From Trichosphaerium sp. ATCC 40318 (taxonomy: Eukaryota; Protista; Tubulinea), in contig JALMLS010000577.1 in NCBI GenBank assembly GCA_038496445.1, positions 992,001 to 1,056,000 on the forward strand: 64,000 nucleotides of DNA, written 5' to 3'. Of the stretch, positions 38,540 through 61,330 are shown one piece after another (the stretch's first letter is position 1; each line of letters opens with the position of its first letter). The notes under the pieces are model-generated. The model ran no database searches. It was given only the letters and a program-made list of their open reading frames with translations, and was not told the DNA's origin. The position numbers and the translations under genes were made by a program.

Positions 38540-41500
38540 ATCACGTGATTTCAAACAGAGCGAACGAGTTATTATTAGATTATTAGCGGTTTTTATTGTT
38601 TGACTGTTTTTATGGCTGTAAAACCTGAGTTGTCACATGCAGCATTGTATGGCTGCTGCTGCTTTTACATTTTGTACAAACTGTCCTTTGTCAATGTAAA
38701 CCAGCCTCTCATTTGTGGTCGTGCGTAGGCGTACCCACTCCCAACGAATAACAGGTCTATAATGTAACAATATTATTGTTTCATCTCTAATGGTATACCA
38801 CGACTGTCGTCGCTTTGGTCTTACTGAAAATCGCCATGGACGATCTCTTTTTCTCACGTTTGATGTCTTTATCCACCTAACAACATGAAGTTAACCACCA
38901 AAATAAATCACAATTTTCAAACCGTTTTAGTTTTTTCTCACTTGCCTTGTGAACGATTTGTACATATTGTACGAACCCTTTGACGATACATTGTGTCGCT
39001 TTGTTTTTTCACTCATGAATAAGTTGACTGAGAACAAGAAAAATCGTGTGTCCCTTGGGAGATGGTTTAGTTTAACCCCGAAATACTGAACAGCCGAGAG
39101 AAATGAGCACTTTGATGGATACGTACCACACGTAATAGTCGTGAACTGAAGGAACAGATTCTCTAGATACACCCATGCCAAGGAGTGTGGCAAGAACGAG
39201 AGCATTGAGTACAGGCTTTGTATTATCGCCAAAAAATCGCGATATTGAGTTTGAGTAACTGATAGAAAATTCCTATCAGGCGTTAGGAAGGCTAGAAACA
39301 CAGATAGGATACAAAGATTTGAGGGCGAAACTACAAAAACGTGATATAAAAAAATGAGATACAGGCACTACCACCCTTCAAAGGCAAGTAAGAAAGAAAC
39401 TGCAGTTATGCGAAACAAAATTGTAGGTAAAGTGAACTAGTAAAAGCTAAATCGTACGCTGTAGTTTACTGTTGTATGGTTGGGTTGCCTGTCTATAGGT
39501 AATGTGTGGTTAATCTCGTTGTCTTTTCTTAATTGCAATAGACGAGGGTCTACCGACTGTACTCTCGTTGCAGCTTGGCGTTGTCGTGTTTTGGGTGGGT
39601 GCTGAGTTAGTTGTGTTGGCGCTTTATTAACTTGCGGTTCTGGATCAACATGCAGCCTTCTCGGACCGTATTGTAGAAAATCATCCATACTATTGAATAA
39701 TATAACCTCCTCGTGATGCATTCTATGTTTTATTTATTGTTGTTTCGTTTAGATTGTGCTTATGTGAATGTTTAAATAACAAATGCATGTTTTGCATTAT
39801 AAAAAACATTACAGGTGTCAAAGAGCTGCAAGGGTACTCGTAAAATTTACAAACTGGGAATACACCACTTAAAAATATTGGTCACAGTGCAGCATTTCCA
39901 AGAGAGTGATAAAAACCGCCTACATAGCACTAACCGACAGCATCCCCAGAAGTAATGCAGCAAAAAAAGTTCACTTTGTGCAGTACATGTTTTATTTTTT
40001 TTTTGGAGGACAGCCAACACAAATAATGTAAGAGTGCAATAGCACGTCTGCCTGATTTAATATTAAGCTTCTGGGCTAGCGACGGATCTCGGAAAACTGC
40101 TTTTTTAACATAGTTCCAAAAACACAAGTACCAATAATGGTTCTAGCTTTGAATATTGTTAACGGTGGTGGCGGAACAAGAAGCTGAAATGTCCATGTTT
40201 TGTCGGAATTTTTTTTATTTTCGTAAAAACAAGGTAACCGCAATAGTTTTCTGAACGATTATCTACACAAGTTTTTTGGGAATTTACGTTCCAAGTTTTT
40301 TGTTTGTTAAACCATGCCATAAAAAAAATCAGGCGGAATGTTAATTACTGAGGAAACCTTTTCATACCATTCCAGGACTCATTTACAACGTTCTCTTTTT
40401 TCGTAAATAGTTTCGTATTGTTGAAAAGTAAGAAGTACAATTGCCTTCACGTTCATTGATGTCATTCTCGTGGGTGTAAGCTGTACGTGGTTTAACAGTA
40501 GTTTGGTAGCGCTAGTTGCTTCTTTGTAGGTGATAAATCGTACCTGTAACTTCGCATGGAATAAAGGTTAATAAGTGCAGTATGAGAATAGAAGAAAAAC
40601 AGCTACAGTAGTATCATAGAAAAAAACATGTGTACGCTGCATTTCCTGCCATTCTGACAATGTATGTTAACCGTGTAGTATTACTATAATGGTTATACGA
40701 ACAAGTTGCACGCAGTTATAGGAACAACAAAGTTGTTTATCTCGTCTGTACAAATAACTAGTTAAAAAAAAAACCAAAGACACGTGTGATTGCACTTTGG
40801 CATATTCTACTATGGAGGAGGAACTTGTTATGTAAACAATAATAATTCTAGGATTGAGAGCTTTAAGTCAATCTAAAACACGCTTGGGACTACATACAGG
40901 CGTCATTTGGCCGGAGAAGTGCCAGCAGCGAATTTTTAGAATTTCAATGATAGTTATTCACCATATTCACCACAATGCTCCCTATGGTCTATTTCTACAT
41001 GTTTTTGATTGTTCTTACCGATCAGTTTAGTACTGCATATAGCCTACCAATCAATTTTCGGTATGTATAAATAGCCTGGCGTTCTACACATACGACAGAA
41101 TCTTTTGTGCATTTTCATCTATTGAACTGGGTATGTGTTCCACCGCTACAATTCTAATCATCCGTCAAAGGATACATGTATGTAAACTTACAATGCAATG
41201 GAACGGTGAAAAATCTTAGGTAAGTGTTATCGTAACATTGTGAAAAAAAACCATAAAAAACACCTGCTGCTTCACTGCGTGGTATGCACAGACCGGAGTT
41301 CGTCCATAGCGTATTTTTTTGATATTTAGTATCTCCTAAACCCCTTTCTGTACTTCGCAGGTTTAGGGGATGTGATCGATTGCCAAACTCCTGAACCAGC
41401 CTCCTATTTTCGAGATGACAGAATTCTGCATTTTAGGAAAAAAACGGCGTGTATCGCTTCCCAGGTGCGCTAGAAATTAATTGGAGTAATTTCATCTAAA

Positions 41501-41590
41501 AACATTTTCTCAATGCTTTGCTTTTTTCAACACAACTTCTATCACGTGATAGAATACTCTACACTTTTTTGAGATTGGGTTCTTTCTACG
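38540..41590 (-). repeat. ~3.1-kb cassette copy 1 (gene + conserved non-coding region)
   Basis: Colinear conserved blocks shared with copies 2-4. Confidence 0.85.
38633..39721 (-). CDS. Orphan 4-exon protein, cassette copy 1 (253 aa; exons 39721-39458, 39272-39127, 39053-38946, 38876-38633)
   Basis: Exon phases join in frame (762 nt). Substitutions among the four copies are mostly synonymous in this frame. Intron 3 has an AG|GCAAGT donor. Confidence 0.8.
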
Positions 41591-42009
41591 GAGGTGAAAT
41601 TACTTCGTAAAAGCAGAAAGAAAGTGTTTCAAGGTTCGGATATCATTAATCTGTGGTAGAATAATAAAACGCTCAACTCGTACTAGTGCCTTGTTAATCC
41701 TAAGAATTTAACTTTACCACGGAAGTTGCCTATAAAAAGGCTAGTTGGGTATAAAACGTGACTGCTTATCGATGAGAGGCAAAAAGAAATCTTTGGTTGC
41801 TTGCTGGCATTCGGTAGCGATGAGTTCGGCTGTACAGCTTACAATTGAATCGTGTAGCTAAAGAACTGAAACAATATTATGTGGGAATGTGTGAGCGCGT
41901 GCTTGGTCGTTGATAACTAGTAACTCAAACAAGAACGAATTGTAAACCAAAGCTTTGACGTGATAATTCATTAACTCACTCGAAAGCAAATATGTTCTCA
42001 TAATTTTCA

Positions 42010-45000
42010 GTCACGTGATTTCAAATATTACCTGTTTACTCTGTTTATTTTGCTTTTGATCTGTAACCGGAGTTGTCACATGCAACATTGTATGGCTGCT
42101 GCTGCTTTTACATTTTTTACAAACTGCTTTTTATCAATGTACACCAACCTCTCGTTTGTGGTTGTACGCAAGCGTACCCACTCCCAATGAATAACAGGTC
42201 TTTGATGTAAAAGTATTATCAGTTCATCTCTAATGGTATGCCACACGTGTCGTCGCTTTGCCTGTACTGAAAATCTCCATGGACGATCTCTTTTCCTTAC
42301 GTTTGATGTCTTTACCCATCTAAGTACTGGAGTTAGTCTTAAAAACAATATTACTTTCATTTCAGAGGCTGTTGTGGTCATCAAAAACCTCTGGCGTATT
42401 TTTTTTAGTTTTTTCTCACTTGCCTTGTGAACGATTTGTACATATTGTACGAACCCTTTGACGATACATTGTGTCGCTTTGTTTTTTCACTCATGAATAA
42501 GTTGACTGCGAACAAGAAAAATCTTGTGTCCCTTGGGAGAAATATTAAACAAAAAGCCCGAACAACGGTACACAAAAAAACATTTACCAATGACGTTTTG
42601 GGAAGGAGCTGATTTTAAATGGTACGTACCATACGTGATAATCATGTATTGAAGGTCCAGACGCTTTAGAGACACCCATACCGAGTAGAGTTGCCATGAT
42701 AAGAGCGTTGAGTACAGGCTTTGTATTATTGCCAAAAAATCGCGATATTGAGTTTGAATAACTGATAGAAAATTCCTATCAGGCGTTAGGATGTAATAAG
42801 AATGTAAACAGAAAACTATGGAAGACCAGGTGAACTGCGTATAGAAACAAAAAGTGTCTCGTGACAAATTAAACAGTGCCTTTTACTAACTTTGCAAAGT
42901 ATATGACACGTTTTGCTACTAGTGCTAGTCATCACGTGTCCAGAAAAAAGACTGTTTGTTGGGAAAAAGGAATATAAAAAAACCCGACAGGACAAATTAA
43001 AAGTTAATTCGTACGCTGTGGTTTACTGTTGTGTGGTTGTAGTGTCTGTCTATAGGTAAGGTATAGTTTCTTTTCTTATCTTTGGTCATTTGTAATAGAT
43101 GAGGGTCTATACACTTTACTCTTGTTGTAGCATGGCGTCGACAGTTTTCTTGAAGCTGTATTGTTGGTTTTTGTTGAGTTTCTTGTGTTGGCTCTTTTTT
43201 AACTTGCGGTTCTGGATCAATATGCAGCCTTCTCGGACCGTATTGCAGAAAATCATCCATATTATTAAATAATATGACCTCCTCGTGCTCCATTCTATGT
43301 TTTATTTGATGTTATTGGCCAGGTTCACAGTGATTACGTGAATGTTTAAACAAACAACGTCAACAGATAGTAGCCGTAAGCACTTCACTAAGTTCAGAGG
43401 CCTGTTTAAATGACTTTGTACGAAAGTTGGATCACACTAGAAGTAGCTACCTTTCACAGTGCGGTAATTCTATTACAAGGGGTAAACAGCGCCTACATAG
43501 CGTTCAGTGGAGTATCCCGCGGAATATTAAAGGGCAAAAAAGTGCACTAGATTCTACAGCGAATGGCGCTATTCTCCCATATTATTGAGTTCTGTGTACC
43601 TCCACGGAAGCAAAATGATCAGTTTTACTTCACTTTGGGAATGCGAAGGGACTTTTCATTTTTTTTTTAAGTAGGAGAAGTCTACAGCCCTTTTTCGAGG
43701 AAGTTGGTGTGAAGCTGTTTGAGAATTATGTACAACACAACCTTCGGGTACCCTTTTCAAATATTCGAAGCTACAGTATTATTCATAAGTGTTCACGTGA
43801 CACTGGAGTTTGACGGAGGCGGAGCGAGACGGTAAATAGTGCATATTTTGTCGGGGTTGTATTGTTTAACACCAACCGTAATAGTTTTCTGAACGATTAC
43901 TGGCTGGGTGCACAACTTTTTTGGGAATTTGTGTTCCGTTCTTTACTTGAGTTAAAAAAAGACTCTTTCTTAAACATACCTTTCTGGGACTAATCGATAG
44001 TTTTCTGAGCTAAACAAGACATTATCATTCATACGAGTCTAGCGCTTAAATTCTTAGAGGGTTTTTTTCAAAGTTGTTCCTTCAAAATTTTCACGTGACG
44101 TTGTTGGAATACGCCTAATATTCGGCTGTATTTCCAAGGGTTCTTTTGTGTTTTTACCACGCGCTAGTGATTTAAACCAGTTATTTTGTGTTAACAGTTC
44201 TGCTGATGGTTAGCGGGGTACGTGATTCTTGTTCTCGTAAGTTGTTTTATGTTCAAAAAAAGTTGGTGTTGTTTTGTCATAATAACTTAAAAAAAACATG
44301 TGTATACTGCATTTCCTGCAATTCTGACAACGTATGCTAACCCCGCAGTATTACCATAACTGTTATTAGAATAAATACGCGCAGTATTGGAAAGTTTAGT
44401 ATAAGACAATCTTAATGTTATAACAATATTAAAACAACAGATCGCTGTTGCTCCATGCTGGATGTAACGTCGTACCTGTAAGTCGCATACAGAAAAGAAA
44501 ATATCTGCGTTATAGTACAGAGAGCATTATGTGTCGAGGATAGCAACTACAGGCGTCGATTTGCCACAAAAGAATGGATAAACGTGTTTTTCGTCCTTAG
44601 TTGATAAGAATTTGTTTAACGCAATGGTGGCAATAACCACTACACCCATCCCTGTTGTTGAAAGAACAGATACATTCTTTACACCGAGGATAGATTGACC
44701 CTCTCCTTTGGCTATTGGAAAGCGTATAGTGGCGCCGTGCGTATACAGTATGTGTGCGTAGTTTTGTATCAGTAATTACTGTAGGTTTGCGTTCCATCGA
44801 TACAATGCTAATTATTCGATAAAGGAGACCTATACATAATAATACAAGACAGTGGTACGAATGAAAAATCTTCGGTAAGCGGTATCGCAACTTTTTTTTT
44901 TCTTCGATTGTTTTCAAAAAACAGACAAAAACGCCTGTCGGGCACTACAAACACAGCCAATCGCGGAGAGACACCACACAAGGAATTATTGAGGTTATTA

Positions 45001-45130
45001 TCTCCTAAAACCCCTTTCTGTACTTCGCAGGATTTTAGGGGATGTGATCGATTGCCAAACTCCTGAACCAGCCTCCTATTTTCGAGATGACAGAATTCTG
45101 CATTTTACGAAAAAAACAAGTACACGTGAT
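42010..45130 (-). repeat. ~3.1-kb cassette copy 2
   Basis: Colinear conserved blocks shared with the other copies. Confidence 0.85.
42076..43293 (-). CDS. Orphan 4-exon protein, cassette copy 2
   Basis: Same exon structure as copy 1: MEHEEVILFN...KPVLNALIMATLLGMGVS...WDTRFFLF...RWVKTS...IQCCM*. Confidence 0.8.
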
Positions 45131-45743
45131 TAATTTATTTCATGAGGCGCGCTATAAAAACGTTTCAAAGGAACCACTTCCTGTTTTTAGACGTTTGATT
45201 TCTTAAGCAAAAATCTCCGCACGTGTTCGGTATTATCAGTTTTTTAGTAGTTCGAGCAAAGAATCCCTATGTACGTTATTTACCTTCTTGACGCGCGTAT
45301 GTTAATAATAACCCTTCGTGTTGTTTAATGGTAATTTTCAAAACTAATTGTTTGTAGCCCAATCGAGCTCTGAATGGCCCAATACGCTTCTAAACAGTGT
45401 CAAAACTACATCCGATAATGTAATTTTGATTGGTGGCGGTTTTTTTTTCAATTATTCACAACTCTAAAAAGGTGTGTAGGGAGTAATTTGATAAACGCGA
45501 GTAGATTACACGCACGTGCTTTTTTGCAACGCTTCCAAACGGCTCTTTTAGAAAATATTTTCACAAGGACTGGCACGGGTCTTTTTTAGTAAAGCGTTTA
45601 ATTAAACATTTTATTAAAGGCACGTTGTACCATAGATTGTAGTATGTCTGAATAAAGTAGAAACTGGTTTTTTTACCAGAATCTATAGCTTTACATTTTT
45701 ACACGTGTTTTCAAATGTCGTTGCTGTTTATTTACTGTGTAGT

Positions 45744-46784
45744 TCATGATATTACGCATCTACCTGTATTCTTGTCGATGGGTTGTAGTTGTATAACAGC
45801 ACGAATAGCTTCATCAAATACTTCTTTTAAACCAGTTTGCGTTATAGTAGAGCATTCCATGTATTTAACAGCACCAATATCTTTTGCTAATTGTGCACCT
45901 TGTTCATAAGAAATTGGTGCTTTTTTTATTCGTGACAACTTTTCAATCGTATCTGGTTTGTCTTTCAAGTCCAGTTTTGTGCCAACAAGAATTATAGGCA
46001 CATTTGGACTGTAATGTGATATTTCTGGCTTCCACTAGAGATCGGAGGTTAAGAAACAGAAAAATCAAAGAATTAAAAAGATTGCTATCTTTACGGGCTC
46101 AAAGATGTTGAAACTACCATAAGGAATAAAAGAAAAGTTGTTGTTACTGAATTAGTGTTTGTTTTTTGCATTTTACCTTTGATGTTACATTTTCGAATGA
46201 GCTTGGGTTTGCTATTGAGAAACAAATCAAAAATACATTTGTTTGCGGGTAAGAAAGAATTCTAAGGCGATCATATTCCGCTCGTCCCGCCTACAAAAAA
46301 AGATTAGTACAAAACGTATTCGCTTATATCGATAAAAAAAATTGGCGATATTCCATTTTTAGTGCATCATAACTCATAACCTACACCTTTTTCATCCCTC
46401 ATAGTTGGTATTATAGGTGCTAGCATGTAAATAAAACAGTGGTTGCTTGTTAACATGAACTACATACTCACAGTGATGAACAAATTGGAGCTCCAAATAT
46501 GGATTATCGTTTCTCTTTTGAATCAAATAATCCGTTGTCAGTTTGAAAAACGTACAGTGTCCCAAAGTCCTAATTTAACAGTTTGGTCGTCAACACGAAC
46601 ATTTGAGCTATAGTTATCTAACGAGAAGTGAATGTTACAGTTTTTAGCTTTTTAGTCGTTTACCGGGTACTGGCGGTATATATTCGCCAGGGAACGCGTT
46701 TGTTGTGTATGAAATGAGCATAGTAGTTTTACCGACTGTTCCATCTCCTACTATAACGCATTTTATTTCTCTAAATGAGTACAT
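45744..46784 (-). CDS. Atypical Rac-like Rho GTPase (4 exons)
   Basis: [40 protein letters not shown]|[22 protein letters not shown], and a C-terminal CVIS. Confidence 0.9.
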
Positions 46785-47455
46785 AAGATATTTATTGGTT
46801 TAGGGCATTTGTGGTGCCCGAAATTATATTTTACCGGCACTAAATTGCTACAGATTGTATGTACAATCTCTGGCATACCTTACGTGCTTTTCTTTACTCA
46901 TTTCGGCGTTTTGTAAAGCCCAGAACCTTTTATAGTATGTTCAGAAAAATAAAGATCAAGTCAATTCGGGTAAGGCGACTATTCTGACTTTAAGTTGGGT
47001 TTGAAAAAAAAACAGTGACAATATAGTATGGGTGTCAAAAAAGTGATAACGAATCTAGTGTCGTTCAATGATTGAGATTGACTATAACACTTTAATGCGC
47101 CACAAATATTCTGCAGGTCCTTCTAAAATGTCAATGCATTAGAACATATAAACGACAATGTATTGAAGGTTGAAATACACGTCCAGTTGACATTTCTCAG
47201 TGCACTTGGTTGCATTGTATCGCACATAAACCAAGTTCACGAGCAACTCAACGAGCTGGCTTACACTTTTTTGATCTTTCTACTCAATCTTGATGTTTAC
47301 ATTCATTCAGTTTCACATGGCTACAGCTATTACTAGAGCTTATTATCAGGGGTTATACAGTTATTTATTATCATACATTTATTTACAGTTTTTTTTAATC
47401 CTTCGCCTGAAGCCAAGCATGCTTGAATGCGATATTTTTAGAATGTTTTCTTTTT

Positions 47456-48260
47456 TTACAAAATCGCACATGATTTTTTTTTCTTGTTCTTCTTTTTATG
47501 CGTAGGCTCTAGTATAACAGAACGAATAGCTTCATCAAACACGTTCTTCAGCCCACGCTGTGTTATGGAAGAGCATTCCATGTATTTAACAGCACCAATA
47601 TCTTTAGCTAGTTGTAAACCTTGTTCAAAAGCAATTGGTGATTTTTTTTGACGTGACAGTCTATTGTTCGTCTCTGGATCATCCCGTAGGTCTAGCTTTG
47701 TACCAACAAGGATTATTGGTTTACCTGGACAGTGATGGGATATCTCTGGGTTCCACTAGAGACAGAAAGTTAGAAATGGAGAAGAAGCAAGGGGAATCTC
47801 ATTCTTGATGTTCGTGCTTACCTTTGATTTAATGTTTCCGAACGAGGTTGGCATGATTATTGAGAAACAAAGTAAGAATACATCAGTTTGCGGGTAAGAA
47901 AGAGGTCTAAGACGATCATATTCTTCTTGTCCTGCCTACAAAATAGATTTAGACATACTTCATCTTAAAACAAGGTTTTTTGAGGTTGTTCTTAAAACGT
48001 ACCGTATCCCATAGGCCTAAGTTAATTACATTTCCATCAACGATAACGTTTGCGCTGTAGTTATCTAAAAACAAGAATGAGTAAACGAGCAATTGTTGAC
48101 AATATTTTTTGGTGTAAAAAGCGCACTTACCGAATACTGTTGGAACGTATTCTCCTGGAAACGCATTTGTTGTGTATGAAATAAGCATACACGTTTTGCC
48201 AACTGCGCCATCTCCGACTACGACGCATTTAAATGCTCTACAACGGCTTGCGTATGACAT
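47456..48260 (-). CDS. rac: Rac-like Rho GTPase (4 exons), canonical
   Basis: [40 protein letters not shown]|[17 protein letters not shown], and a polybasic tail [13 protein letters not shown]. Confidence 0.93.
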
Positions 48261-48629
48261 TTGTTGTTGTTATGAGGTTGTTAGTTGATTATGAGGGAGT
48301 TTATGCGAAAAGCACTGTTAGGCTAAAATTATGTTCAAATTTTCGCCTAACGCCATGGAGTACTTCTTTCACAATTGCGCATAGTGGTATAGCGTAAGGA
48401 GGAAATAAACGCTGTCAAGTTTGGTTTAAGCGTATAGGTGTACTGATTGAGGTAAATGGTGTCAACGCGGCTAGGTCTTTACAGAAACCATGCAGATACA
48501 CGCAACGGTAATTCGCATTACAAAAAAAGAACATTGCTGTACTAAAAGTCAAACAGAGTAAAGATGGATACATTGTACTTGTGTTGTCTTAAACATTTCA
48601 CAGTATTTAATGCTCGTTTTTGTATAACT

Positions 48630-49010
48630 TTAACCTAGAATACTTGGACCAAAACCTCCTGTTTATACTATAAAAACTGTCAGAATAAGAAAGAAATAAG
48701 AAAAAATACTCTTACCAATCGATACCAGCATGATCTTGGTATCCAAACGCCAATACCCCAAGCTTCAATTCCAATACTTAGCTCTCAGTTGAGATCCATC
48801 TGAAGTATGAATTAGCGTTTCCATCAAAGCAACTGGGAAACCTGCGTAAAATGTAGTTGTACAGGGTTTAGTTTGACTGGATACTCCAAAAAGCAATCCA
48901 GGGTCGGAGTTCACACTATTTATCTGACGTCGTTTGGTATTACAGGTTTATTTGGAGTACATAAGATAGATTTAAGGGTACAGGCCACAGACTTTGGTCT
49001 AAAGCAATTA
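48630..49010. pseudogene. Degenerate LRR-gene fragments; 48630-48870 is duplicated at 52370-52660
   Basis: GVHTIYL..GVHKIDL on + resembles the 6131 LRR gene. Shared strings (gaatacttggac, aataagaaagaaataagaaaaa, ttccatcaaagcaactggga) recur at 52.4-52.6 kb. Confidence 0.45.
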
Positions 49011-52000
49011 ATTTTTATTAGAGTGTTTTTACACTCCGGCTATGTAACCGGAGTTGTCACATGCAACATTGTATGGCTGCTGCTGCTTTTACATTTTTTA
49101 CAAACTGTCCTTTGTCAATGTACACCAAACTCTCGTTTGTGGTTGTACGCAAGCGTACCCACTCCCAATGAATAACAGGTCTTTGACGTAACAGAAAAAT
49201 CATTTCATCTCTAACGGTATACCACGCCTGTCGTCGCTTTGGTCTTACTGAAAATCTCCATGGACGATTCTTTTTCCTTACGTTTGATGTCTTTACCCAT
49301 CTAAGTACTGGAGTTAGTCTTGAAAACAATTTACGTTCAATTCAGAGGCTGTAGTAGTCATCAAAAACCTCTGGCGTATTTTTTGTAGTTATTATTCACT
49401 TGCCTTGTGAACGATTTGTACATATTGTACGAACCCTTTGATGATACATTGTGTCGCTTTGTTTTTTCACTCATGAATAAGTTGACCGCGAACAAGAAAA
49501 ATCTTGTGTCCCTTGGAGAAAGTTAGTTTTGAACCCGAAATAGTCAACAAGAAATCGGTTTTGGTTGGAGCAACTACCAAACGGAGAAAAATATCCACGG
49601 ATTAGCAACGCACCATACGTGATATTCATGTTGAAAAGCACTGGAAGCTTTAGAGGCTCCGATACCAAGGAGTGTGGCAAGAACAAGAGCATTGAGTACA
49701 GGCTTTGTATTATCGCCAAAAAATCGTGATATTGCGTTTGAGTAGCTGATAGAAAATTCCTATAGGAGTGTTAGGAAGGCTAGAAACGTGATATGAAACG
49801 AGCCAAACTATAAAAACGTGACTGGACAAACTAAGATACAGGTACTACACGTCATAACGCTGTAGTATAGCAATGCTATGGTTGTCTGCACGAAGGAATA
49901 AAACTTTGAAATAGGTAATTTAAACAACTAATTCGTACTTTGTGGTTTACTGTTGTATGGTGTAGATATCTATCAATAGGCAGGGTATGGGATCTTTTAT
50001 TGTCTCTTCGCATTTGTAATAGGTGAGGGTCTATACGCTGTACCCTTGGTGTAGCATGGAGCCGACGGGTTTTTTGCAGTTGTGTTGCTGGTTCCTTTTT
50101 AACTTGCGGTTCTGGGTCAATATGTAGCCTTCTCGGACCGTATTGCAGAAAATCATTCAAACTGTTGAATAGTATGACCTCCTCGTGATGCATAAGGTGT
50201 TTTATTTCAATTCAATTGTGCTTATGTGAATGTTTACACGAATGCATTTTGAACTAAAATAAACGTGTTATCAAAACGTCTAAAGGGGAAACTGACAATG
50301 GAATGTATGACGGAAAAATATGCGTCACAGCACGGTATTTCTTAGTGAGTGATACACATCGCCTACATAGCACTAACTGAGAGCATCTTGCGGAACTTAA
50401 TGCAGTAAAAAGTTGACTTTGTGCAGTACATGTCTCATTTTAGGACCTACATTTTCTCTCCCTAACACAGCAACTCAAATTATGCTACACGCTACAGCAC
50501 CAGTTATTATCCACCACCGGGTATGTTACGGATCTCGGATAAACTGTATTTTAACATTGTTCATATAACGATTACCAATATGTTTCTAAGTGTTAAACTG
50601 TTGTTTATGGTGGAGGCGAACAAGAAGCTGAAATGTCCATGTTTTTGTCGGGGGAGTTTTTATTTTCTTTTGCAAGGCAACCGTAATAGTTTTCTGAACC
50701 GTTATTTGCACAAGTTTTTTGGGAGTCTCAAAGTTATGAAATGTACAACTGAAACTCATACTATCACGTGTTTTTAAATTCGTTCGACAATTTTGTAGAT
50801 TATTTGTGTACGATTTTATTTCCCTGTAAACAGAGAAAATTAAAAACTGAGAATAGCTTTCAATACCTTGCTACGACTTACAATTATTCGATACGTCCAA
50901 AAGGGGTCAAATCTCAAACAGAGTAGTGTAACGAATTTTGAAGCCGTGTTAAATTTTAAAATGTCCTTCTTGTGTTGACGTTTGATGTCAACCACTTGAA
51001 TGAAGTGTAAAGAATGCGTGCGTACAAAGTTTATTTTATTGTTGTTTGGTACCCGCCCGTTAGTTTATTACTAACGGTAGTCAAATTCTTCTGTTTACTG
51101 CAGGCTCCTTAGATGAGAAAAAAAACCAACTGTGCATTATGATAACCAAAAAAAAACATGTGTACACTGCGTTTCCTGCCATTTTCAAAACTTATTCTAA
51201 CCCCGCAGTATTACCATAACTGTTATTAGAATAAGTTGCATGCAGTTAAGTAGACAAAAGGTTTTTATCCGGACAATTGAGACGAGTTAAAAAAACTGCC
51301 AAGCATAAGGTTTTTACTACCACCAGTGGTCGTATCGGTGTATTACCCACAGGGATGAAAAAGATATGTATAAGTATTTTAGTCGAAGTATTGAGCTTCA
51401 GTGGCATCTTCAACAAGCTTGCAAGTACAGAAAGGCGTCAGTGTGTCAAAACAGAGTGAAGTAAAAGTGAAAATTAGTTCATTATTTCTCTACACTAGGC
51501 AGGTAAACACAGGCCTTACTCTATACCCTCATTTCTGTAGATGGTATTTACTATCAGCTTAGCACCACACAAGACTAACCGCAAGCGCTTTTTGTTATTG
51601 TCAGGCGCGTGACAACCGCCTTAGCGCCTCTACACTTTGCTGGAGCATTTTGTACATTTTTTATCGGTGTATGAACTGAGTACGCTTTCCATTGCTACAA
51701 TGCTATTAATTCGATAAAAGATACATTATAATACAATACAACAATAGAAAGAACGAAAAATCTTCAGTAAGCGTTATCGCAAACTTTTTTTTTTTTTCTT
51801 TGTGATTTTGTAAGAAAAACATAAAACGGCCTTAAATAGTATTGATGAAATGCAAACAACCGTATAGAGTTAGTCTAGGATGCGTCATTTGATATTTCTA
51901 TTCTCCTAAAACCCCTTTCCGTACTTCGCAGGATTCAAGGGTATGTGATCCATTCCCAAACTCCTGAACTAGAGTCTTTCGTTCGAATACCAGAATTCTG

Positions 52001-52170
52001 CATTTTAGGAAAAAAACTGGCGTGTATCGCTTCCCAGGTGCTCTAGAAATTATTTAGACTAATTTCATCTAAAAACCATTCCTCAAACAAATATTAGGCT
52101 TCTTTTTTTTCAACACAACTTTTATCACGTGATGTGGCGATAGAATACTTTACACGTTTCGAGATCGGTA
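49000..52170 (-). repeat. ~3.1-kb cassette copy 3
   Basis: Colinear conserved blocks shared with the other copies. Confidence 0.85.
49057..50193 (-). CDS. Orphan 4-exon protein, cassette copy 3
   Basis: Same exon structure and intact reading frame. Confidence 0.8.
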
Positions 52171-52875
52171 ATCTAGAGTGGCTCGGTACTGCTAAACAAG
52201 CGCCTTCTTCTTATGGATAGTCTATCTAACCAGTCGAACAATACAAAAGTGCATGGTACTAATAATAAATTTTGAAGGAAGTTTCTTTCTGTTGATTTGT
52301 CGTCTTACACAACATTGCATTTCCCTATGTAATTAGTACTTTTTGATAGAAAAAGAGCTATAACTTTAAAGCGAGAATACTTGGACAAACCTGTTTAGAG
52401 CATGATAACTGCCAAATAAGAAAGAAATAAGAAAAATTAAGCCCTTACCAGTCTCCTTCGACAAAACCAGGATGATTTGTTATAGTGCAAAAATCACCAA
52501 GATGGACATCAGCTTTTTTTCGTTATGTTGAAATAATTCTTGTCACATCTCCAATTTCAATATGTCAAGCTCTCTTTTGAGATCTGGTTGACAAACGGAT
52601 CAAATCTTTTCCATCAAAGCAACTGGGAGAACCTGCATTAAGTGTAGTTGTTATGGTTTACTTCCAGGGCTTTAATTTGTTGTTTGATGGATTACATGGT
52701 TTGAAAGCCTTACTACTCGTTGTTCTTTTTTGAGTCGTTAGCTTAAGTGCAATTACGTTGACGCCCATTCGATGAGGGTTCACTGACAAACGCATCTAGA
52801 ACATGATCTAGTAAGGACTCATAGTGTACTTAAAGTAATCTCAAAAAAAAAGGTATTTATTGGATGTTGAAACTA

Positions 52876-53373
52876 TCAGATATCACGTGTAGCAATGTAC
52901 ATTTTTACTCCATGTTGCATGTGATCTCCAGTGACCTTAAACCCTCTCCCTTTATAAAATTCTTTAGCCTTTGCAGTCTCCAATACAGCTTGTTTACATC
53001 CTTCTTTCTTGCCGTACTGGATACAATGTTCTAAGAGTTTACTTCCGTAACCTTTGCCTTGATGTCCAGGTACAACAGCCAAACTTGTTATACACAAAAC
53101 CTTTCCGTTTGGATCATGAGTTTCATGAGGCGATTCATCTAGTGTTGGTATACGCATTTTAGGCCATTTTTCTGATGTTATGTAACCTAGAAACGTTGGA
53201 GTCTTATCTTTTTGCTCTTGTGGCTCGTATAAGATAAAGCAACCGTTATTATTTACTTTTACGCGTTCTGTTATTATTTTAGGTAGCTCTTCGGTCCCAT
53301 ACGGTGAAAATACGAGATTATCGAGCTTTATTAGTTTTTGAATATCCTCTGGTTGGTCTGCTACGCGTATCAT
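52876..53373 (-). CDS. GNAT-family N-acetyltransferase, intronless
   Basis: LCITSLAVVPGHQGKGYGSKLL (motif A) and AKEFYKGRGF. Confidence 0.9.
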   Translation of the reverse strand: MIRVADQPEDIQKLIKLDNLVFSPYGTEELPKIITERVKVNNNGCFILYEPQEQKDKTPTFLGYITSEKWPKMRIPTLDESPHETHDPNGKVLCITSLAVVPGHQGKGYGSKLLEHCIQYGKKEGCKQAVLETAKAKEFYKGRGFKVTGDHMQHGVKMYIATRDI

Positions 53374-53736
53374 TGTATATAGGCGACTTTGCTTTTATTC
53401 AGGTCAAGATTCCCGTTGACGGCCGGTTTGTACAAGTTTTATTTGAATAATTTTACTTCTCCATTCATCAAGTATTGTACTCCCACCATTCCACTTGTCA
53501 CCAAGGGCCCAGTTTGTCGCAGAGCAGAAAATGTGCTAACTTAAGCGTTTATGTCAGCGTTAAGGAAGGTCAGAATGAAACTACGCTGTAGCTACAAAGG
53601 TGAAATTCGTTTTTTTTCGCTAATTAAATTGTTTTATGATAGAGTAAAAGTGCAAATGGTTGTCATCCTTTGATAAACAACCAGGTGACTTTAAATCAAT
53701 GCAACAAGGCTACTGTTACAATTAGACTTTTATATT

Positions 53737-55206
53737 TTATTTCAGTGGTACAATAACTGTTTTACTAGGCTCTCCTTTTGCATAAATACGCTCTACTCCA
53801 GAGACCAGATACGCTACATTTCCGGCAATCACGTGTACTTCAGGTCTTTCACGTCTTATAAAACTGATTGCACCAGTTTTTAATGGAACAGTCGTATTAT
53901 AAGCGATTGTTGTACTCAGTTGCCAGTTGATCATGTCCTACAACCAAAAATGAGCAACTTATGAAAGCTTATAAGTGATATGATTACACATACCTTTGAG
54001 TAAGCATGCCCACCAGAGTTTGGGTTTAACGGTGTGTCATCAAAATTTACTGTTTTGTAATGAAAAATAATATGAAAGCCTCTGTTTGTTTTATACAAGC
54101 TTGCATCTTCAGCGAATGCCTCCTCCCAAATTGGAACCTTTAGTACACGATATGTTTCGTCGGTCCAATGGTTAGCTATAGCTATACCAAGGTGCTCCGC
54201 TAAAAAATATTAGATGGAATGCTAGTTTGAAAAATCCCAATTAAAGTACCTGTAGGATTGTAAAATGTTGCAGTAAACACGAGGAGTATCGAACCGTTTT
54301 GCAGTTGAAGTGGCGCAGGATTACAATTTGATGTATCCCACGTTGTTTTAGGCTCAACCGAAAACTTGTGAATTGTCCAAGGCCCATACAAACTAAATTA
54401 TCAGGTAACAATTCTTCTACAGTTTTTTGTTGTAATATACCTTTTACTAGATGCTATCGCTGGATATTCACCTTCTTCTGTTGCTCCTGGAGCATAAAAT
54501 ACTTCCGCAGTAGGTAGATCAGTTATATTGCTACTCCTTTGGCCAGTACAGGGAGTGTCCGGTTTTTTAGGACCAAGGTGATAATGATATAAAAGATACG
54601 TTCCATCTTGAGCACGTATAATATGTGGATTTATATTAGAAGCGCTCAGCGTCACTTCCTTAAAATAAAATGGGCCTTCAATACTATCACCAACAGCATG
54701 TGCAATAACTGCATTATATTCATGGTTTTCAGTAATAGCAGAACAAACAACATCAACCAACAAGTGATATTTTCCGTCTTCTTCAGCTCTTATTATAGAA
54801 CCGCCCCAACTAGATATCACGTGATTAATGACTAAAAGCTGTAAAAAAAATTATGACTTTACTAACGTTGATGCAGTAAGGCTCTTATTTTTGTTTGGGG
54901 GCAGTTCTTGGTTTGGATAGATTATTTCGCCTGGAAGTTGGTTTAGCGCTCCACAGCTTTAATAAATTAGCTTTTAAATAATTTTTATACAATATATAGA
55001 CGTACTCTGGGCCAGTCCAACCTTTATCACAGACGCAATTGCCGTTTGAGCAAAAACCGTTTAAGTTACAGTTCTCATCAGTTATACACGCTTTCCACGC
55101 GTAAATATAAGTGTTCATACAGAATTAACGTACAGGCAGCGTGTACTACCAAAAAAATCAGAATCTGTATCCCTAGTACTCTAAATAACTTTATCGAGCA
55201 ACACAT
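53737..55206 (-). CDS. Secreted EGF-like + beta-propeller glycoside-hydrolase-like protein
   Basis: Signal peptide; CITDENCNLNGFCSNGNCVCDKGWTG; SSWGGSII..DGKYHL; NPHI; NPAP; RRERP. Confidence 0.6.
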
Positions 55207-55335
55207 TGCGGTAACGCGAGGCGTTTCCAATATTGTAGAATAAAGAAAACCAGCTTCGAAAGTCAATATCGTTCAAAACTGGTTTTTTTCAAATTCCCGC
55301 TGTAAAATAACCGCAACAATCAGAAATACTTCCAA

Positions 55336-57980
55336 ATGGCTATTACATTGGAAGTGCTCATGCAGAGCGTTAAGGAGAACAATATTAACGTAAATAAGAG
55401 AGTTTTAGTTCGTCATCAAAAGCCAAAAATTGATTTTTTGTTTTTTAGGGACGTACTGGTTCTCCTACGCGATTAAGATTTCCTCGTAAAGCGCGATCGC
55501 CTATGAAACACGATATGTTCTCATCCGTTATAAAATCAGAAGTATTCAAAAAAACTCCTCCTCGCAAGCCACGTAATCGTAAAAGGCGTATTACACTCGA
55601 TAGTAGTGAAGTTGCTTTTCGTAATTCAACATACAAGGTAAGTCCAATTTGATCAATCGCAATACGTTCCAATAAGTGTGAATAAGCGAATACAGACATT
55701 ATTGATCAACGCTTTTTCTGGTTTTTGAATCTCCCTTTTTGTTTTGGATGCGTGTTGCTAAATTAAGTTTAGAAAGCCCTGCGTGATACCCTTACGCCTA
55801 GTAAAACAGTAAAACGGAGGTTTTCAAGCCTAAGGAAGAAATTTAGCAAGGTAAAACCCGAAAAAATAGAAAAAAGGGAAAAACGCAAAAAGCAAACAGC
55901 TTATTTTGCTTGAGTTCGGAGTTTATGGGTTTCTATTAATATGAACTACAACTATATGCTTACTATTTATAGGAATCAATTAGACCTGTATTTGGTACTT
56001 CGTTGGCACACGTGATAAAAAATCAACACACGTGTGGTAACGTATCAAATATCCCAGCAATTGTACAACAATGTATTGATTACCTCGTACCAGCCAAATG
56101 TACGCCTTGACGTTTTTGATGTCAAAATACAAAGCTTTATACGTACTGATGTATTTAGTGAACACTGTTGGTCTATTTAGAGTACCTGGTGACGTAGAAG
56201 CAGTTCGTAAACTAACATCAGCTACAGATGCTTGTACGACTTTCTTGATTATTATGTTAAATATGAGAAGTATTGACACGTTTGTTCTAGGCCGTGAGCC
56301 TGATTTTGGTTCTGTTCAAGTTCATTCTGTAGCTTCTCTTATTAAAAAGTACATAAGGGCTCTTCCTGAGCCTTTACTAAGTTCAAATCTTCGAGCTGAA
56401 TTTCTCTCTACGTGTACGTTAATGAACTTGTTTACGGTTCCTAGTATTTTATTTATGAGCTTCTAGGTGAATTAGATAATGAAGATTCGGAAGCTATCAC
56501 ATTATACCTTATTGGTATCATAAAGGAGTTACCTACACTCAACTTCTATCTTCTTAAAGTGCTCATTGAGATGTGCACCAAAGTTGCAAAAAATAGTGAC
56601 GTGAACAAAATGACAGCAAAAAATTTGGGTGTTGTATGGGGATTAACTCTTTTTGGTGAACAGCATATTCCGCCACTGGAACTATTGAGCATCACGCCTA
56701 GACTTAACAAAGTCGCAACACTAATGATAGAGAATTACGATGTATTATTCAAGGCAAGTCGAAAATACTTAATTTTTTGTTGAACACATGTTGTACATAT
56801 CTTCACTCTTATACTCATGTTTGTCTGGTTTACCTTTCTCCGTACGATAATTATTTTCTTATTAATTCTATTCAGGAACGTACACTTCCTTCTTTAGCAC
56901 TTGACAGTATAAACGAGAAGGTACCAACCTTTTTTTTAAACAGTATCCACGAATCACTAGAAAACGATTTTCATGAATTGTTTTGGCCATCTCCCACGAA
57001 ACTTATGGCTATATCTAAGCTCCTCTCTCTGTGTTTAACATATTATATAGGAAGAGTCAAAGGGCGCAGTCCCAGCTCCTTCAAGCTGGCGTAATTCTTT
57101 GCGATTAAAGGTAAGCTCATACGAAATGAAAGTGATGAAGTTCTTGCTAATATGTTTCTTGTAGAATATGGGCTCACTTCATAGAAGTGTTTCTCAAGTA
57201 TTCAAAAAAGGACGCTCTGGAAGTCATAAGAGGAAATCAAGTGCGTTGAAATGATGCCAATGCGCATACCATTCCAAAAAAAGCGATTTCTTGCTGACAA
57301 TCTTTATTCAGGTGGTGACTTTGAGACTATTAATGCGATTTCTACTGAATCGGCACCACCGAGAGTCCATAAAGAAATAGTCTCATTACGGCCTGCGTTA
57401 CTTCTATACATAAATACAGATGAAACATCATCATGTAGAGCTTTAAATTTAATTGAAAGAATGCAAACAAAGATAGTGAAGATGTGTAATGAGAAAAAAT
57501 CTGAGCTGTCATCTAAGGAAGTTCTAAAGTTAGCCAAGGAAGCATCTTCAGTTTACGTCTGCAAGGCACGTGATAACAAAAAAATACCGTTTATTGAATA
57601 TCATGCACGCACGCGGATGCTAATTTTTTATGGTACAGGGCGAAACCGTTGAGAGGCATTCAATGTCCAAGTTGAAAGGAGAACTTTCAGAGAACGTATG
57701 TTCATTTCGTTTTCACTTTTTTTTCGTTTTCTAAATTGGATAACCTTTATCTAGTCCGCTGATGCATTAAATAACAACCTTGAAAATATTATACTACGCG
57801 ATGATAAATTACGTTCGCCAATCTTAATCACAGAGGTATGGAATCTCATGAGAAAGTTTTTGATATTTTTTTATGTAACAAAAAGCTCTTACTTACGCTG
57901 GCAAAATATAGAGGTCAATGGTTGTAGGCTATAATAAAAGATACTGGCAAAGAGCATTAACGTCTCAAGCCAGGTCATAG
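55336..57980 (+). CDS. RhoGAP domain protein
   Basis: IPAIVQQCIDYL, VGLFRVPG (arginine finger), VASLIKKYIRALPEPLL, NKMTAKNLGVVWG. End approximate. Confidence 0.9.
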
Positions 57981-58169
57981 ACCCGAATGGGCTTTTTTTT
58001 AAGAAAACTGTACAATGTATAATAAATAAATAAAAGAGTTGTAATAAATTGATAAACGGCATTCTTTATTATTAGTACCATGTACTTTTTGTATTGTTCG
58101 ACTGTACAGGTGTTATATAGACTATCCATAAGAAGAAGACACTTGTTTAGCAGTACCGGCACTCTAGTT

Positions 58170-61100
58170 AGTAGAAAGGACCCAATCTCTCAAAAGCGTG
58201 TAAAGTATTCTATCACGTGATAGCAGATGTGTTGGTTAAAGAGCCAATATTTGTTTGAGAAATGGTTTTTAGATGATTATAGTCTAAATTCTGTCTAGCG
58301 CACCTGCGAAGCGATACACACCATTTTTTTCCCAAAATGCAGAATTCTGGTATTCGAACGAAAGACTCTGGTTCAGGAGTTTGGGATCGATCACAGCCCC
58401 CTTGAATCCTGCGAAGTACGGAAAGGGGTTTTAGGAGATTAGAAATATCAAATTATGTGTACTAGAGGTCCTCTACGCGGTGGTTTGCATGTCAGTACTG
58501 TTTAAGGCCGTTTTTTCATGTTTTTCTTACAAAATCACATAGAAAAAAAAAAGTTGCGATACCGCTTACCGAAGATTTTTCGTTCGTACCGTTGCTCGTA
58601 TTATTACGTATAGGTCTCCTTTATCGAATGAATAGCATTGTAGCAATGGAAAGCGTACCCAGTTCATACATCGATAATATCTATTAACTACGCTTCCGTC
58701 GCAATGGTAGACGCTAAGGCAGTTGTCAGGTACCAATAACTACAAGGGCTTGTGTTTTGTGTTGTGAATTACTTTTCTGATCGGAAATACTACCATCGGG
58801 AATGAAGATCTAAACCAAGGGCATCGTTGTGTTGAACTGTTTGGTTCTAGAGAAATTCTTACATTACACTTTTCTTCATTCTGTTTTGACATGCTGACGC
58901 CTTTCTGTACTTGCAAGCTTGTTGAATTGAAGATGCCACTGAAGCTCAATACTTCGACTAAACTACTTTTAGATATCTTTTTCATCCCTGTTGGTAACAC
59001 ACCGATACGACCAAAACGCTGTGTTTGTAGTAAAAAACTTCCGTTTCGTTTTTTTTTAACTCATCCCAGTTGTACCTTTTGTACTGCTTTAACTGCATGT
59101 AGCTTATTCTACTAACCGTTATGGTAATACTGCGGGGTTAAAATACGGCAGCAAATGCAGTGTACACACGTTTTTTTGGTTATCATAATGCAGAGATGTA
59201 AATCTCAAATAAACAACTATTACAAAGGAGTCTGCTGTACAAACAGAAGAGTTCTACCGGCGTTAATAAACTACGCTCCAAAAACAATAAAATACACTGT
59301 ATACGCACGCACTGTATACACTCACTCAAGTGGTTGACATTACACGTCAACACAAGAAGGACATTTTAAAATTAAACACGTTTCAAAAAGAATGTATCGC
59401 TAGATTTGATGACCCAATTTGGACGTACAGAATAATTATAAAAAGGTATGGAAAGCTTTTCTCTTTTCTCGTCCCATATGAAAATATAAATCATTCACAT
59501 ATTCAACAGAATGGTACAAACGAATGTAGCAACAATCACACGTGATAGTTTGAATTTTTCTATGGTTCATAACTTTGATTTTCCCAAAGAACTTGTGCAC
59601 ATACAAATAATGGTTCAGAAAACTATTACGGTCGCGTTGTAAGGAAATAAAATCACCCCGACAAAACATGGACATTTAAGCTTCTTGTTCCGCCTCCGCC
59701 ACTACAAAACATTCAAAAGGAAGAAACAATATTGTTCCGAGCCCATTAAATAGTTGAACACTTAGAAATATAAATAGTTAGTGAACAACACACGTTATCC
59801 GAGATCCGGAATGAACCCAGGGGTGGATAATAAATGGTGCTGTAGCGTAGCATAATTTGAGTTGCTGTGTTTGGGAGAGAAATGTAGGTACTAAAATAAG
59901 ACATGTACTGCACAAAGTCAACTTTTTACTGCATTTAGTTCCGCAAGATGCTCTCAGTTAGTGCTATGTAGGCGATGTGTATCACTGTCTCGGAAATATC
60001 GTGCTGTGACGCGTATTTATTCATCATATTCCACTATGACGTTATCAGTTTCCCTATTAGTTGTTTTGACAGATGTAACACGTTTATTTTAGTTCAAAAT
60101 GCATTCGTGTAAACATTCACATGAGCACAATTGAAACGAAATAAAACTTAGAATGCATCACGAGGAGATCATATTATTCAATAGTTTGAATGATTTTCTG
60201 CAATACGGTCCGAGAAGGCTACATGTTGACCCAGAACCTCAAGTTAAAAAAGAGCCAACAAAGGAAACTCAACATAAACCAACAATACAGCTTCAAGAAA
60301 ACTGTCGACGCCATGTTGTAACGAGGGTAAAGCGTATAGACCCTCACCTATTACAAATTCGAAAAGACACTAAGAGATCCCATACCCTACGCATTGATAG
60401 ATATCTACACCATACAACAGTAAACCACAAAGTACGAATTAGTTGTTTAAATTACCTATTTCAAAGTTTTATTCCTTCGTGCAGAACCCATAGCATTGCT
60501 ATACTATAGCGTTATGACGTATATTACCAACACCCTAGTGTCTCTAGTCATGTTTTTATGGTTTAAAGCTTCGAACCGATGTTTCATATCGTGTTTATAG
60601 CCTTCCTAACACTCCTGATAGGAATTTTCAATCAGTTACCCAAACTCAATATCACGATTTTTTGGTAATAATACAAAGCCTGTACTCAATGCCCTTGTTC
60701 TTGCCACACTCCTTGGTATGGGCGTATCTAAAGATTCCAGTGCTTTTCAACATGAATATCACGTATGGTGCGTTACCGATTGAACGGGAATATTCTTAGC
60801 TTGTTCGGGGTTAAAACTAAACTTTCTCAGGGACACGAGATTTTTCTTGTTCGCGGTCAACTTATTCATGAGTGAAAAAACAAAGCGACACAATGTATCG
60901 TCAAAGGGTTCGTACAATATGTACAAATCGTTCACAAGGCAAGTGAAATAAAACTTCAAAAAACCTAACTATTTGTGCCACAGTTTTTTTTGATGGCCAC
61001 TACAACTTCTGAATTGAACGTAATATTGTTTTTAAGACTAAATCCAGCGCTTAGATGGGTAAAGACATCAAACGTAAGGAAAAGGGATCGTCCATGGCGA

Positions 61101-61330
61101 TTTTTAGTGAGGCCAAAGCGACGACAGGCGTGGTATACCATTAGAGATGAAATGATAATTCTGATACGTCAAAGACCTGTTATTCTTTGGGAGTGGCCGT
61201 GCTTGCGTACAACCACAATCGAGAGTTTGGTGTACATTGACAAAAAGCAGTTTGTAAAAAATGTTAAAGCAGCAGCAGCCATACAATGTTGCATGTGACA
61301 ACTCCGGTTACATAGCCGGAATGTAAAAAC
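58170..61330 (+). repeat. ~3.1-kb cassette copy 4 (inverted)
   Basis: Reverse complement of the same block series. Confidence 0.85.
60153..61298 (+). CDS. Orphan 4-exon protein, cassette copy 4 (inverted)
   Basis: Same exon structure and intact reading frame. Confidence 0.8.

Follow-up and report, generated by a model that had tools for sequence, protein, structure and literature searches.

Conserved non-coding elements retained beside duplicated regulatory genes have been described in animals (PMC1896008, PMC1852409), and they are the closest known kind of system to the locus analyzed here, a ~3.1-kb cassette that recurs in the genome of the amoeba Trichosphaerium sp. ATCC 40318 and consists of a four-exon gene together with a long, partly conserved upstream region. 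The window, that is, the whole 64,000-nucleotide (nt) stretch under analysis, covers positions 992001-1056000 of contig JALMLS010000577.1 (assembly GCA_038496445.1) in a 70-Mb eukaryotic genome with spliced genes and ~37% G+C. Like the animal elements, the cassettes combine ordered blocks beside paralogs of a probable regulator with exon-level conservation and freely evolving spacers. Unlike them, the cassettes belong to a single-celled amoeba with a small genome, their blocks lie within 2 kb and are candidate control DNA, and the copies are local tandem or inverted duplicates rather than products of whole-genome duplication. The cassettes are a small-scale protist example of this kind of system.

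Five cassettes share ten conserved upstream blocks

Repeat finding and a four-way alignment place four copies of the cassette in the window, in agreement with a preliminary description of this stretch that had reported a four-copy ~3.1-kb unit with three copies on the minus strand and one inverted. Copies A (38.6-41.6 kb), B (42.0-45.2 kb) and C (49.0-52.1 kb) are direct repeats on the minus strand, and copy D (58.2-61.3 kb) lies in inverted orientation on the plus strand. A whole-genome DNA search, the check on copy number that the preliminary description had named, added one older cassette, copy E, on the plus strand of the same contig ~66 kb downstream (contig positions ~1,119,150-1,122,580; L014:2650-6090), and found no cassettes beyond A-E. 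All five copies are thus confined to ~92 kb of a single contig.

A block caller applied to the five-way alignment (15-column window, mean pairwise identity of at least 0.62) delineates ten collinear blocks upstream of the gene in all five copies, which together account for 368 columns of ~2,000 nt. These include all the motifs listed in the preliminary description, which had likewise recognized the same ordered islands upstream of each ATG. The blocks span 39760-41441 in copy A, 43334-45113 in copy B and 50222-52013 in copy C, all on the minus strand. The largest block, of 117 nt, lies 2 kb upstream of the gene, at 41329-41441 in A, 44998-45113 in B and 51899-52013 in C, and has a mean pairwise identity of 0.80. 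Its counterpart in copy D, on the plus strand at 58327-58441, contains a T-run, GCAGAATTCTG, GGTTCAGGAGTTTGG, CCTGCGAAGTACGGAAAGGGG and TTTTAGGAGA, and is followed by the nine further blocks between 58559 and 60124 (58559-58587, 58621-58657, 59106-59136, 59145-59174, 59579-59594, 59610-59632, 59657-59697, 59957-59980 and 60108-60124). In BLAST comparisons of D with E, this distal block matches at 79% over 89 nt (E = 3e-9) and the exons at 73-89%, so that it is about as conserved as the exons.

The strength of this conservation is best gauged against the rest of the cassette, in identities that count gaps and on a scale where shuffled sequence aligns at 0.48. Between E and A-D the blocks are 0.65-0.69 identical, compared with 0.46-0.50 for the spacers and 0.42-0.47 for the introns; the latter two have therefore decayed to the level of shuffled sequence, which bears out the earlier impression that the spacers are poorly alignable. 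Among A-D, with the C-D pair set aside, the corresponding values are 0.82-0.86, 0.50-0.57 and 0.51-0.60, and for C-D itself they are 0.92, 0.72 and 0.72. The same block caller, when run on the alignment of the gene, picked the exons and returned no blocks in ~590 intron columns. Given this spacer and intron baseline, the blocks are conserved well above the neutral expectation, and they are under purifying selection.

The blocks are also non-coding. No reading frame is open in all copies and no open reading frame (ORF) is shared; the distal block contains 1-nt indels, and the block that precedes a conserved GGTAAG varies in length from 54 to 57 nt, with lengths that are not congruent modulo 3. 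Hidden exons or a micropeptide can be rejected since a 1-nt indel puts the frames that start at the ATG of the distal block out of register between A/B and C/D, and E lacks this ATG. Both the anchor spacings and the frames therefore agree with the preliminary description, which had called the islands non-coding because of indels that are not multiples of three. A dispersed motif or repeat was rejected as well: throughout the genome the blocks occur only in the five cassettes, with their core motifs elsewhere at control frequency. A metagenome scan for the distal block yielded no matches.

Duplication involved the gene and ~2.1 kb of its 5' flank together, and purifying selection is seen both on the protein and on the blocks; the suggestion that gene and upstream region had been duplicated as a whole and kept under selection has thus held up. 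The genes located between the copies are unrelated to the cassette, as had also been noted, and include two of the Ras/Rac type, a GNAT acetyltransferase and a RhoGAP. The two Ras/Rac-type GTPase genes form a tandem pair, 77-79% identical, at 45744-48260 between cassettes B and C.

The cassette gene is intact and under purifying selection

In all five copies the four-exon gene retains open spliced frames of 250-258 residues with no internal stops; the preliminary description had already regarded it as intact, with four exons, in A-D. The gene of copy A occupies 38633-39721 on the minus strand (exons 39721-39458, 39272-39127, 39053-38946 and 38876-38633, stop included, from a check of frame and splicing; 253 residues), that of copy B 42076-43293 on the same strand (43293-43015, 42775-42630, 42531-42424 and 42319-42076; 258 residues) and that of copy C 49057-50193, also on the minus strand (50193-49939, 49759-49614, 49511-49404 and 49300-49057; 250 residues). 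The gene of copy D lies on the plus strand at 60153-61298 (60153-60431, 60622-60767, 60831-60938 and 61055-61298; 258 residues). The introns are 63-239 nt long with GT-AG splice sites, except for intron 3 of A-D, which is GC-AG; the donor of this intron is AAG|GCAAGT in A-D (38940-38945, 42418-42423, 49398-49403 and 60939-60944) and an ordinary CAG|GTAAAC in E (L014:5623-5628).

Relative to copy E, exon substitutions fall mostly at third codon positions, which fixes the reading frames; the same pattern corrected the frame of exon 2 taken from the plain ORF list. Counted exon by exon, the ratio of non-synonymous to synonymous substitution rates (dN/dS) is 0.11-0.33 among the copies, and the encoded protein is under purifying selection in every copy, the outcome of a comparison that the preliminary description had named. 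The synonymous divergence (dS) is 0.20 for C-D, 0.34-0.48 within A-D and 1.0-1.3 between E and the rest. Accordingly, E is an old duplicate that supplies the neutral baseline for the comparisons given above.

An uncharacterized family with a possible winged-helix domain

The preliminary description regarded the cassette gene as an orphan; instead, it belongs to an uncharacterized family of which this genome contains at least 28 other loci and which has transcript-derived relatives. Protein searches were made exon by exon, and the joined 250-258-residue model served for lengths and stop counts. The cassette exons have no Pfam matches, and exon 4 matches at least 28 more distant loci across the genome. 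A profile built from exon 4 and five paralogs matches ten proteins among 1.84 billion cluster representatives, mostly ORFs from MMETSP transcriptomes along with some from JGI metagenome contigs. One of these transcript-derived paralogs, P0001, is identical over two exons to a locus of this genome (L015) and has its introns at the positions seen in the cassette gene, which supports the splice model of the latter; another, P0005, which carries the label Trichosphaerium sp. ATCC 40318, has matches of 92-95% in this genome. Common to the family is a C-terminal domain of ~150 residues that corresponds to cassette exons 2-4. The cassette protein also shares an N-terminal motif with the family, indicating that translation does begin at the annotated ATG. 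The 1.84 billion cluster representatives contain transcript-derived paralogs but no product of any of the five cassette genes, and these five may be expressed only in particular conditions.

Other members of the family (loci L015-L025) are located on contigs C11, C142, C216, C289 and others. They include multi-kb segmental duplicates such as L020 and L022, which are 98% identical over 6 kb, while L023, L024 and L025 are 85-90% identical over ~2.1 kb. Other subfamilies that were duplicated in multi-kb pieces retain just the gene at comparable age; hence, the pattern of upstream blocks may not be general in the family.

With respect to the possible function of the protein, the AlphaFold model of P0001 has a mean predicted local distance difference test score (pLDDT) of 68, with 75-90 in the core, and contains, in order, a helix, two strands, two helices and two strands. 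The best structural matches of this model are almost all winged-helix DNA binders (MarR, ETS, HSF and IRF). The likeness to the ETS and HSF domains extends to this order of elements and to basic residues that precede the third helix and lie in the wing. The differences are that sequence searches of Pfam and the PDB gave no match, that the Z-scores do not exceed 5.1, and that the model is of a paralog rather than of the cassette protein itself. Given these Z-scores and Foldseek E-values of 0.05 or more, the winged helix is a lead and not an assignment. The family appears to be lineage-specific and, on the strength of this model, possibly DNA-binding, with a winged-helix-like domain.

Sequence rather than fold is conserved in the blocks

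The preliminary description had offered a structured RNA as one possibility for the islands and had listed a hairpin of ~90 nt in each copy, and neither is supported. An Rfam search of the cassettes yielded nothing at the gathering score and otherwise only chance-level matches (best E = 0.44). When each block was analyzed with RNAalifold on both strands, the structure conservation index was 0.03-0.24 for nine of the ten. The exception, the distal block read on the gene strand, reached 0.58 with z = -2.0, a value attained by 5 of 100 column shuffles; in its fold, 1 of 28 pairs is compensatory, and 95 of 500 shuffles reach this level, in a test that has low power with five sequences. Folded one at a time, the copies have z-scores between +0.5 and -2.4 and adopt different structures. 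No consistent duplex between blocks was detected, the best mean z being -1.4 among 110 tests. The supposed hairpin is neither a conserved nor a stable fold: its consensus folds at about -4 kcal/mol and shows no compensatory change, and the element reduces to repeated ACTGCA/TGCAGT motifs that form no stem. An apparent compensatory long-range pair in copy A, ATGCAGC with GCTGCAT, was also rejected, because a repeated motif explains it equally well and it is absent in B and E. With no Rfam family, no significant covariation and ordinary folding energies, what is conserved in the blocks is sequence, not fold, and the signal of a folded RNA is absent.

Candidate control DNA

We propose that the blocks are shared, modular cis-regulatory DNA kept by local duplicates of a gene for a possibly DNA-binding regulator, an interpretation to which we assign about an even chance. 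To our knowledge, no promoter or enhancer has been described in this amoeba. The blocks may act as protein-binding DNA, and the alignments reveal dyads in several of them, namely ATAAC-N1-2-GTTAT, GTAAT-N13-ATTAC (TAAC...GTTA in E), GCAGAATTCTGC and ACATGT.

Beyond the distal block, at a distance of ~90-110 nt, all five copies contain a CACGTG palindrome followed by a T-run. The extended palindrome TCACGTGA is found at 41542-41549 in copy A (~100 nt beyond the distal block), at 52125-52132 in copy C and at 58213-58220 in copy D (~105 nt upstream of the distal block), whereas copy B has CACGTG sites that start at 45123 and 45220. This longer sequence occurs 12 times in the window (4345, 5551, 29181, 34467, 38541, 41542, 42011, 43793, 44091, 52125, 54817 and 58213) compared with 0.74 occurrences expected from shuffles, and the CACGTG core is present 44 times in total; where checked, around the cassettes, TCACGTGA is intergenic. 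The excess marks it as a general signal of this genome, and it is probably a promoter or boundary signal of general use.

The five cassettes are local duplicates of one gene, with A-C direct, D inverted and E older, and each duplication carried the gene along with ~2.1 kb of its 5' flank. Most of the flank has since diverged at the neutral rate, whereas selection has maintained about ten short blocks in constant order. Under the proposed cis-regulatory interpretation, these could comprise a proximal promoter element just before the ATG, several middle modules with dyad-symmetric motifs of the type bound by dimeric factors, and a distal module 2 kb upstream, composed of CACGTG, the T-run and the 117-nt block, which could serve as an enhancer, as a boundary or as an alternative promoter.

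Several observations weigh against this interpretation. The assignment of the encoded protein to the winged-helix class is weak, given Z-scores of at most 5.1, a mean pLDDT of 68 and the lack of Pfam or PDB sequence matches. The 117-nt block is conserved like coding sequence and is long for ordinary factor-binding sites, and a control region of 2 kb is extensive for a genome whose organization in the window appears compact. Gene conversion acts among A-D, so that part of the similarity between these copies does not come from selection. Finally, two donor-like strings are retained in every copy, which makes a spliced non-coding transcript possible.

Alternative explanations

The last of these points leads to an alternative under which the blocks are parts of a transcribed but unstructured non-coding RNA. 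The messenger RNA of the gene could begin at the distal block, which would then be a non-coding first exon ahead of an intron of ~1.9 kb in the 5' untranslated region, or ahead of a long leader; alternatively, a divergent or antisense long non-coding RNA could start near the ATG. A long regulatory leader and a divergent long non-coding RNA were both examples given in the preliminary description. The CACGTG and T-run just upstream of the distal block resemble a promoter region. One of the two retained strings, GTACRG on the gene strand within the distal block, is preserved in all five copies, and its context, GAA|GTACRG, resembles the real donors of the gene, GTACGA and GTACGT; the other, a consensus G|GTAAG, is preserved, as GGTAAG, on the opposite strand of another block, likewise in all five. 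An AG directly precedes the ATG in four of the five copies, and the gene-strand fold index of the distal block (0.58 with z = -2.0, matched by 5 of 100 shuffles) could reflect a transcript as well. However, acceptors that would match the two donor-like strings are not conserved, copy C lacks the AG before the ATG, the known introns measure 63-239 nt rather than 1.9 kb, and the block edges do not match conserved AG...GT pairs on either strand. Moreover, a leader of 2 kb, if left unspliced, would contain numerous upstream ATGs, and no such transcript was found among the 1.84 billion cluster representatives. We consider this explanation somewhat unlikely.

A narrower form of the same idea, which we regard as unlikely, is that the 117-nt distal block, possibly along with others, supplies the functional portion of a non-coding RNA or messenger RNA leader that is specific to the family and acts by its sequence and not by its fold. 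For example, the encoded protein or small RNAs might bind to the distal block. If this were true, each copy of the possible transcription-factor gene would carry its own RNA-level switch.

That the blocks are functionless in themselves and represent patches of repeated gene conversion between neighboring copies, a possibility raised in the preliminary description, is in our estimate very unlikely. Copies A-D do contain clear conversion tracts. The final 78 nt of exon 3 (38946-39053, 42424-42531, 49404-49511 and 60831-60938 in A-D, respectively) differ by at most one base among these copies, though dS elsewhere is 0.2-0.5, and exon 3 of copy E shows 17 mostly synonymous differences; this points to a recent gene-conversion tract in exon 3 of A-D. 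Within the distal block, A and B are 99% identical over 84 nt. Conversion cannot, however, explain the conservation in E, which keeps at least seven blocks in order at 0.61-0.70 identity, well above shuffled sequence and far below the level of a recent tract. Nor would conversion be expected to affect the same ten short patches in every pair of copies while leaving the introns untouched.

Still less probable, and in our view very doubtful, is the notion that the blocks are small RNA genes beside the protein gene, whether small nucleolar RNAs (snoRNAs), small nuclear RNA (snRNA)-like genes or microRNA-like hairpins. In copy D, Rfam gives a single weak match with a C/D-box model (E = 0.44); the opposite strand contains guide-plus-CTGA-like strings, and pairing is possible between the ends of the distal block. 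A precedent would be the polycistronic C/D-box snoRNA clusters that lie beside protein genes, with which the cassettes share short conserved blocks, variable spacers and, in some blocks, a terminal CTGA opposite the gene strand. In contrast to such clusters, the boxes are not kept across the copies and there is no significant model-based match. A C/D snoRNA cluster on the opposite strand was rejected on these grounds, as the C box (RUGAUGA) and D box (CUGA) are intact in C and D only and absent in A, B and E. An snRNA-type gene was rejected because the cassette contains none of the promoter motifs seen at the U2 genes of this genome. The lack of any match at the Rfam gathering score, the ordinary folding energies and the fact that A and E do not retain T-runs at the putative 3' ends likewise stand against small RNA genes. 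Of eight U2 snRNA genes retrieved from this genome (L026-L033), seven have an upstream CCACAAT(A/T)AA near -55 and GATAAATCATGTTCAA near -30, and six also have a common 3' box, CTCTAAACA.CAAAGAAAAAC.

A mobile element whose non-coding blocks are needed for movement would fit a multi-copy unit of fixed length with one inverted copy, but is extremely improbable given that, apart from the CACGTG palindrome found genome-wide, the cassette lacks terminal inverted repeats and target-site duplications, and that it has no transposase or reverse transcriptase (in line with the preliminary description, which had seen neither transposase nor terminal inverted repeat), that the five copies all lie inside ~92 kb of one contig, and that the dN/dS values and conserved intron positions are those of an ordinary cellular gene family.

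Implications

The comparison of old and young paralogs within a single genome functions here as a form of footprinting, which marks ~370 nt of candidate control DNA in this amoeba and ties it to an uncharacterized, expanded and possibly DNA-binding protein family. The blocks offer concrete targets for reporter or binding experiments. Rather than a new kind of system, the cassettes provide a dated protist example of non-coding elements that are kept after local duplication.

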